A DNA stretch of 63,914 bases, filler included, from Reticulomyxa filosa (taxonomy: Eukaryota > Protista > Foraminifera), in NCBI GenBank assembly GCA_000512085.1. It is 14 parts of 14 records of this genome, joined end to end, with 100 filler letters (N's around TTAATTAATTAA, not from the genome) between each part and the next. Parts side by side here need not be neighbours in the genome. Positions count along the whole stretch, not along the records: positions 58,596 to 60,183 come from ASPP01026414.1; 13 more parts are not named here. One strand, written 5' to 3'. Shown here piece after piece: positions 58,596 to 60,283 of the stretch. How positions within the stretch are numbered: the stretch's first letter is position 1; every line of letters begins with the position of its first letter. Below the pieces are notes generated by a model that worked only from the letters and a program-made list of their open reading frames with translations, was not told the origin of the DNA and searched no databases. The position numbers and the translations under genes were made by a program.

Positions 58596-59294
58596 CGAGG
58601 ACTATGGTAGGTAGTGGTGGTATCGTGTATACTTGTGAGTAGGAGCCACATATTGCAGCTTAGCAACACTATGTCGAAGGAGGAGGTTTAGTACGAGGTA
58701 CCGTGCGGCTTCCTTGGCCTTCCCTATAGTGCCTAGTAAGTGTTGGCGTGTGGAACAACTCCTACGGCCTGAGAGCACTGATGAGCCCAATGGCAGGGCG
58801 AAACCGTGTATAGCCTTCTAGGCCCAGTCGGTCCGAAACCTACCTATGTTGCACCCTTTGGGGAAACCAATAGGACAGGAAGATTTGAGCAACCTAGAAA
58901 CTAATATATATACACCCTTACACGGTAGTAATGGCCAACATAAAAGGATCGATCGGCTCCCAACACCAAAGTGCGTATTAATACCTATAAATGGTATAAT
59001 ACGCAGGATGGAGGAGGGTATTGCAGTTCATATATGGTGGTGGCAATCTGTTGTGAATTAACATACAGGGGCCAGAGGCTACGTTGTACCATAAAGGGTG
59101 AAAGGAGGGATGGAAACTGCGACTAAATGCATAGCACTTCTAGAAGGCATGTATTTATGTCTGTGTAGATGTTTCACTTGCGTGAGGGTCTTCGGGTGGT
59201 GGAGGGTATGTAATGGTGAGGTACGGGACGATCACCTTTTGTTGGCTAAAAATTCACTTGATCCGGTATTGATATTATGGCGGAATGCAGTTTT
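58596..59294 (+). ncRNA. Putative large structured non-coding RNA (5'-truncated by contig edge) containing a hammerhead-like motif
   Basis: GC-richer island with no credible ORF, many nested complementary segments and a TTTT at its 3' boundary. Identity unknown. Confidence 0.55.
58766..58824 (+). ncRNA. Hammerhead ribozyme-like motif
   Basis: CTGATGA (58778-84), stem II GCCC/GGGC with a 7-nt loop, then GAAAC (58800-04). Flanking GGCCT/AGGCC could close stem I. Stems I and III are imperfect. Confidence 0.55.
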
Positions 59295-59419
59295 ATAATA
59301 TATTTATATTTTTATATTTATATTCAAAAAAAACGAAGTTCAACAAAAAAGAGAAAGAAGAGAAGCTATTTTTTCCCAAAATAAGTAACCCTGGAAGAAT
59401 AAGCAATTCTATTTCTCTG

Positions 59420-59499
59420 GCAGTCTATGCATATTGGTTTGCAATGCGATAATCTCGCAACTTCTTTTAGAAGTCTGGGTTCGAGTCCCAGAGATTGCA
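59420..59499 (+). tRNA. Atypical tRNA-like cloverleaf (long variable arm, abnormal anticodon loop); tRNA pseudogene or tRNA-derived element
   Basis: Acceptor GCAGTCT/AGATTGC+A; D arm TGCA-TATTGGTT-TGCA; TGCGA-TAATC-TCGCA arm; variable arm ACTTCT-TTT-AGAAGT; T arm CTGGG-TTCGAGT-CCCAG; T-run downstream. Confidence 0.7.
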
Positions 59500-60283
59500 T
59501 AAATTTCTTCTTTCTTTTTTGAAGCTTTTATATTTATCTTTTTACCATTTAAATCTTTGTTATGTTTGATAATATATTTTATATCTTTTATTGAAAAATT
59601 ATATACCTAAAATAGATCATAATTATTTTAATTATATTACTTTTTTTACTATAAACTAATTTAAGAAAAAAAAAATGTAATACAAAAAACGTTTAAAGTA
59701 ATTTTAATAAAAAAGTAAAAATTTTTAAATTTATCGTTTAAAAGTATATAAAAAGTATTTTTTTAAAAAATCAAGTAATAAATTGAATTTATTTATATAT
59801 TTCATGTTATCTTTTTCTTTTTGTTCATCTTCAATTTGCGTATCAATTTGATGTCGAATATTTGTAGTTTGATTTTTTACTTAGTTTCAATTTTTTTAAT
59901 TCATCGGATTTGATTTGATAGTGTTCCAATAAATAATTAAATTGTATTAAGTTGTTCATATTATTTTGAATAAGTCTATGTTGTGCAACATCTTCAATTT
60001 GCACTTTTTTTTGCACTCTTTATATGTAAAAACAATTGACATTTGAGTTGAAAATGAAACTTAAATGTGATCCACACATTCTATCAAATATCAATGAATA
60101 TATATATTATACTATTTGTTCAAATATTCATACTAAATTATTTATTAAAAATAATATGCAAATTTGATATCTATTTCAGAAAANNNNNNNNNNNNNNNNN
60201 NNNNNNNNNNNNNNNNNNNNNNNNNNNTTAATTAATTAANNNNNNNNNNNNNNNNNNNNNNNNNNNNNNNNNNNNNNNNNNNN

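Follow-up and report, generated by a model that had tools for sequence, protein, structure and literature searches.

Hammerhead ribozymes cut themselves into unit-length RNA by internal 2'-OH attack, and the cutting of multimeric or read-through transcripts into such units is established for retrozymes and has been proposed for Penelope-like elements (PLEs). In animal retrozymes and PLEs, the minimal type I hammerheads work after dimerization, for which their stem III arm is palindromic (PMC4209133, PMC7229834), and hammerheads that are single, variable, or truncated occur widely across eukaryote genomes (PMC4209133). A weak stem III is frequently seen, the minimal hammerheads of PLEs show poor cleavage in vitro (PMC3088659, PMC4209133), and insertions beside C3 and stem I impair cleavage in a natural variant that was tested (PMC3088659). 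In the Clec2 hammerheads, 150 to 1500 nt lie within helix I (PMC6155905). Arrays of hammerheads have been described for prophages (PMC3088659), and we observed arrays of two to four in the viral contigs L120, L127, L119, L134, L061, and L016. We found no report of a hammerhead from Foraminifera in the literature.

We analyzed positions 58596-60183 of the window, that is, of the whole 63,914-nt stretch of DNA (filler included). This piece consists of a G+C-rich island, A+T-rich DNA with a tRNA-like cloverleaf, and the probable end of a minus-strand gene (Table 1). As the original prediction had claimed, it harbors an exact hammerhead core with the G10.1-C11.1 pair at 58778-58804: C3-U4-G5-A6-N7-G8-A9 and G12-A13-A14 are all present, and stem II is formed by GCCC (58785-88) and GGGC (58796-99) around the loop AATGGCA (58789-95). 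That prediction also had the core, stem II, GGCCT/AGGCC, GTA 58808-10, and TACGG/CCGTG at their correct coordinates. CUGANGA occurs only once when both strands of 58596-60183 are scanned, and no minus-strand hammerhead, as in viroid-like circles, was found in the same interval.

Table 1. Features of the analyzed piece (positions along the window)
Feature	Position	Strand	Remarks
G+C-rich (43-56% in most bins), G-skewed non-coding island	58596..59290	+	left contig edge cuts the island
127-nt hairpin domain directly 5' of the motif	58639..58765	+	z -3.0, segment chosen after the fold had been seen
Alternative type III cleavage strand	58763..58771	+	5-bp stem III, C at 16.1, 2-bp stem I
5' arm of stem I, type I reading	58766..58777	+	58766-70 (GGCCT) is the distal 5-bp helix strand
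Hammerhead core strand C3-A9, CUGAUGA	58778..58784	+	exact consensus match
Stem II with 7-nt loop AAUGGCA	58785..58799	+	4 Watson-Crick pairs, G10.1-C11.1, pair probability 0.95
Core strand G12-A13-A14-A15.1-C15.2, GAAAC	58800..58804	+	consensus match
Loop III (3 nt, CGU, non-palindromic) and GUA triplet	58805..58810	+	predicted cut after 58810
3' arm of stem I, type I reading	58811..58824	+	one pair, bulged A58812, imperfect helix, distal AGGCC
Second half-core GGUCC-GAAAC-CUACC	58829..58844	+	no CUGANGA of its own in the piece
8-nt perfect complement of 58803-58810, then A	58919..58927	+	long-range stem III; p 0.008, single test
Strongest local hairpin of the island	58955-59025		z -4.2 to -4.5 on +, -3.3 on -
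tRNA-like cloverleaf	59420-59499	+	Rfam tRNA 34.8 bits (above cut-off), folding z -3.4
Last exon of protein gene, probable	59735-60020	-	two frames meeting at an A6 run near 59870

The core and stem II are intact, and stem I and stem III are defective in each of the four registers that we drew. We infer that the motif is a true hammerhead by descent, of which the present copy has decayed within a repeat- or retroelement-type host and would show little or no cleavage, a reading to which we assign a probability of about 0.55. The host element is probably the island itself, which is followed by a (TATATT)4 run (59299-59324, about 100 nt before the tRNA-like gene) and then by A+T-rich DNA; island and run look like the right end of an inserted element. 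This non-coding G+C island with its short-repeat tail supports decay. Against decay stands the fact that damage has struck the arms but spared 13 of 13 core bases and 4 of 4 stem II pairs, because random decay need not give such a pattern. Nor did the collections yield a sister copy by which a family could be proven or the decay dated. According to the mechanism that we propose, the hammerhead would reside in a G+C-rich non-coding element, either a retrozyme-like repeat or a PLE terminal repeat, inserted in an A+T-rich eukaryote genome. Folded into the three-way junction, the transcript of an intact copy would cleave itself through attack of an internal 2'-OH, and the resulting unit-length RNA would go on to circularization or reverse transcription; the present copy would be a decayed one.

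The island has stops in all six frames and no Pfam family, and the piece, which is open at its left edge, contains no reverse transcriptase or GIY-YIG frame. Self-alignment of the island for internal repeats stayed at chance level. No homologue was found in any of the collections: an exact 30-mer of the locus had 0 matches in metagenomes, BLAST against phages and plasmids returned A+T-rich noise only, and the same stem III start in viral contigs belonged to one unrelated family with a long stem III. The original prediction had spoken of an active or decayed self-cleaving module of a repeat. Decay in a repeat is indeed the most likely reading, but no second core, internal repeat, homologue, or PLE frame was found, and an active module appears weakly supported. 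Taken over its full length, the island shows no more folding stability than its shuffles. Resemblances to rRNA, RNase P/MRP, U3, SRP, and group I/II introns noticed by eye were discarded, as Rfam gave nothing at E values up to 10, and so was the C/D snoRNA sR19 (12.7 bits), in which a box C look-alike was present and the downstream box D absent.

The core at 58778-58804 is real and far above local chance: when the G+C-rich 700 nt were dinucleotide-shuffled 100,000 times, the strict core never appeared, and a loose core came up in 10 of 20,000 shuffles. For calibration, the same core pattern was collected from viral and prokaryotic collections, giving 60 distinct cores. Of these, 54 sit in complete hammerheads of type I or III whose stem I has at least 4 contiguous pairs; such a core thus usually marks a real hammerhead. 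Together with the Hammerhead_3 match, the best Rfam match in the piece apart from the tRNA-like one, these figures support the hammerhead ancestry that had been predicted. They also argue against coincidence, in which G+C-rich non-coding or repeat DNA with another role would resemble the hammerhead consensus by chance, as do the fit of the flanks (p 0.03-0.05) and loop II AAUGGCA, which resembles type III loops of phage and bacterial contigs (AUGGCA, ACGGCA, GUGGCA) and, like the CA preceding it, agrees with known type III members. Such a chance resemblance is rather unlikely in our judgment, even if strict cores, expected by chance at 0.001-0.004 per Mb, would still be met in a very large scan. 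Also in favor of coincidence, a few of the 15 exact-pattern matches in prokaryotic genomes are without a sound fold, the motif gives no folding signal (z 0.33 and -0.54), and its Rfam score lies under the cut-off.

In the type I register, the A15.1-U16.1 pair and an H17 are present, and GUA (58808-10) is correctly placed with U1.1-A2.1. Stem III has 2 bp, and stem I is closed by a distal 5-bp helix in which GGCCT (58766-70) pairs perfectly with AGGCC (58820-24). The duplex of the stem I arms reaches -14.1 kcal/mol (p 0.03-0.04), and the whole type I fold scores above 95-97% of random flanks given the core, a fit that lends the type I fold modest support. Proximal to the core, stem I is discontinuous, with 1 pair in the type I and 2 pairs in the type III register, so that the flanks fit a hammerhead worse than most real examples do. 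The claim that the type I fold nests cleanly in the surrounding structure holds for the distal helix (pair probability 0.40) and for stem II (0.95), but not for the pairs building the active site (0.0005-0.003), and in the lowest-energy fold, which retains the distal helix, C3 and the cleavage triplet are tied up in pairs of a shifted register. Adopting the active type I or type III fold requires 9.0-9.5 kcal/mol, which ranks the motif behind 23 of 28 controls. This penalty is not decisive, given that L142, the canonical minimal control, is poor as a monomer, too (10.9 kcal/mol). Loop II belongs to a known type and may make a tertiary contact with the bulged stem I arm; the loop I partner seen in L126 and L133 is absent here.

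Compared to a canonical minimal type I hammerhead, the locus has one extra U in the stem III palindrome (58807) and one extra A in proximal stem I (58812), which may be mutations or assembly errors. Since the neighboring gene carries a probable homopolymer frameshift, single-base assembly errors are plausible. The motif could therefore be a canonical genomic copy whose odd bases are sequencing errors, or else a type I hammerhead that has a minimal stem III and still works, if slowly, being cut after the GUA at 58810 with the help of a second copy, of proteins, or of a contact of loop II with the bulged stem I. The placement of the GUA and of U1.1-A2.1, the stability of the stem I arms, and the presence of the distal helix in the lowest-energy fold would all agree with such a ribozyme, as would the common occurrence of weak stems III and the poor cleavage of minimal PLE forms in vitro (PMC3088659, PMC4209133). 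We nevertheless consider it unlikely that the motif is functional or canonical in either way, given the very low probabilities of the active-site pairs and the impaired cleavage of the tested natural variant with insertions beside C3 and stem I (PMC3088659). The visible 180 nt upstream and 490 nt downstream of the motif contain no second full core or direct repeat that could act as the second copy, and the dimer route is weak: the self-duplex of the stem III arm amounts to -0.7 kcal/mol, versus -8.3 kcal/mol for L142. With 2 bp present and the palindrome of the helix III loop broken by one U, the arm is not palindromic, and the usual dimer rescue thus looks unavailable. L142 itself is a 523-nt contig filed under the bacterium Demequina iriomotensis with two canonical minimal type I hammerheads 394 nt apart, both with a palindromic stem III arm; it looks like an animal-type retrozyme and is possibly a contamination of that assembly.

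The type III alternative with C at 16.1 and a 2-bp stem I, also part of the original prediction, was confirmed. TACGG (58763-67) pairs with CCGTG (58804-08) as stem III and C58768 occupies position 16.1, whereas a canonical type III hammerhead has U16.1 and a closed stem I of about 6 bp with a loop I; if the ancestor was of type III, U16.1 would here have been replaced by C, and most of stem I and loop I would have been lost. Two further cleavage strands were rejected, namely, GUC 58831-33 (58830-33, 4-bp stem III) and GUA 58925-27 (58919-26, 8-bp stem III), each leaving zero proximal stem I pairs. Without a stem I, the strand at 58919-27 would be at most an inhibitory pairing, or chance. In an exhaustive scan of 58596-60183, every strand fell short of 4 stem I pairs, of 3 stem III pairs, or of both.

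A perfect core and a type III-like loop II with no local partner are what one would expect of a split (discontinuous) type III hammerhead, in which the motif would be the intact enzyme strand and the cleaved strand, pairing with 58771-77 and 58803-08, would lie more than 180 nt upstream, off the contig, or on another RNA. The piece is open leftward, the intervening 127-nt hairpin would bring upstream sequence near, and mammalian Clec2 provides a precedent (PMC6155905). Such ribozymes are rare, however, the cleaved strand would face competition for the stem I arm from the local distal helix, and the local type I flank fit (p 0.03-0.05) would be left to chance. A split hammerhead is an improbable explanation for this locus.

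The significant covariance-model match that had been proposed as a check did not materialize: Rfam RF00008 (type III) gave 20.9 bits, below its gathering cut-off of 48.5, with an E value of 0.21 on the whole piece and of 0.049 on 365 nt. We also built our own type I and type III models from hammerheads gathered in public collections. With the type III model, the motif scored 33.9 bits, compared to 46-70 for members and 21-28 for core-only controls, a score that is inflated because the training matches were partly selected with the motif's own pattern. With the type I model, trained on prokaryotic examples with a long stem III, it scored 21.6 bits, which is the level of the core-only controls (16-25), held-out type I hammerheads reaching 27-40. 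Judged by these scores, the motif is more than a bare core but falls short of a complete ribozyme. The predicted preference for type I is thus not clear-cut, as Rfam and our own models favor type III.

A second half-core lies just downstream of the motif (Table 1), and GAAAC occurs five times on the plus strand in 700 nt (58800, 58835, 58863, 58897, and 59113, four of them 28-35 nt apart), a count reached in 5 of 20,000 shuffles. The over-representation of GAAAC on this strand would fit a nested double hammerhead, that is, a second type I hammerhead with its CUGA cut off by the contig edge and with the motif inside its 228-nt loop II. Its stem II would be 58599-602/58831-34, its GAAAC 58835-39, and its cut after 58927 (or 58613), and pairing of 58803-10 with 58919-26 would let the two hammerheads switch one another. 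At its left end, the piece reads C-GA-GGAC, i.e., N7-G8-A9 plus an exact complement of GUCC, the composite null is 0.0002, and what follows the two distal GUA sites is the same but for two A/G changes, so that one arm could pair with both. We nonetheless regard this arrangement as very improbable. The test was defined after the sequence had been seen, the fold costs 14.5 kcal/mol with a stem II probability of 0.0001, and both a contig edge inside the core and a 228-nt loop II are required. In addition, the core look-alike at the contig start (12 of 19 matches) is reached by 70% of shuffles, and the two-GAAAC layouts in viral contigs and metagenomes are ordinary phage hammerheads or chance matches, none of them homologous. 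That the island is a structured RNA with either two interlocked hammerheads or a split hammerhead with a far-upstream cleaved strand is, taken as one proposal, a long shot as well.

Outside the island, the tRNA-like cloverleaf at 59420-59499 has good A and B boxes and is followed by a T-run, with no CCA. Its anticodon arm has a 5-nt loop, and its variable arm is long and perfectly paired, which makes it a tRNA of the class II-like kind whose anticodon loop is non-canonical. ARAGORN made no tRNA call at this position, and the T arm had no match in viral contigs; the element is a pseudogene or a tRNA-derived small RNA. The very low G+C content of the spacer (9-12% at 59596-59795), the lack of CCA in the tRNA-like gene, and a probable intron would agree with a eukaryotic origin. 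The gene at 59735-60020 is oriented toward the tRNA-like gene and contains a 14-nt repeat encoding QIED twice, and the A6 run near 59870 is likely a homopolymer error. When the two gene pieces were searched separately, no homologue of the protein was found, only spurious repeat-protein matches.

Hammerheads occur in thousands of eukaryotic repeats, protists included, and one more damaged copy changes little. The decayed hammerhead would gain modest importance in a lineage without reported hammerheads, for instance, if it is foraminiferan, where it would mark an undescribed ribozyme-bearing repeat family. A nested or split hammerhead, if real, would represent an architecture new to the hammerheads of microbial eukaryotes and would add a new way to regulate self-cleavage.

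We refuse the locus functional membership of any hammerhead subtype, because a defining arm fails in each. Among phage and bacterial type III hammerheads, L133 is identical in 31 of 32 nt over the core, an identity partly forced by the search pattern, and shows no similarity to this locus outside the core. The type III hammerheads L126, L133, L141, and L143 and RF00008 share with it the loop II class ending in GGCA, the UG...CA at the base of stem I, and a 4-5 bp stem III. They differ in having U16.1, a 6-bp stem I, and a loop I complementary to loop II, whereas here position 16.1 is C and the 2-bp stem I carries a 4-nt loop. In L126, L133, L141, and L143, loops I and II kiss, and most of these hammerheads are followed by a ribosome-binding site and a start codon. 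The discontinuous type III hammerhead in the mammalian Clec2 3' UTR (PMC6155905) likewise has an enzyme strand with no adjacent cleavage strand, but here the piece contains no partner strand and no visible mRNA context. For the telomere-associated type I hammerheads of fungal and protist PLEs, which have a long helix III (PMC4209133), the eukaryotic-microbe context is plausible, and a long helix can be drawn here as well, of 8 bp with 58919-26 or of 4 bp with 58829-32, although both registers leave 0 proximal stem I pairs. The type I hammerheads of animal non-LTR retrozymes and PLEs have a palindromic, dimer-forming loop III, 4-6 pairs in proximal helix I, and tandem copies 170-400 nt apart, the flanking repeats of a PLE, or a reverse transcriptase frame, whereas loop III is not palindromic here, proximal helix I has 1 pair, and neither a tandem copy nor such a frame is visible in this piece. 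With these hammerheads, the locus nevertheless shares the core, the 4-bp stem II, the type I order, the 2-bp stem III, and an open, bulge-interrupted stem I closed by a distal helix.
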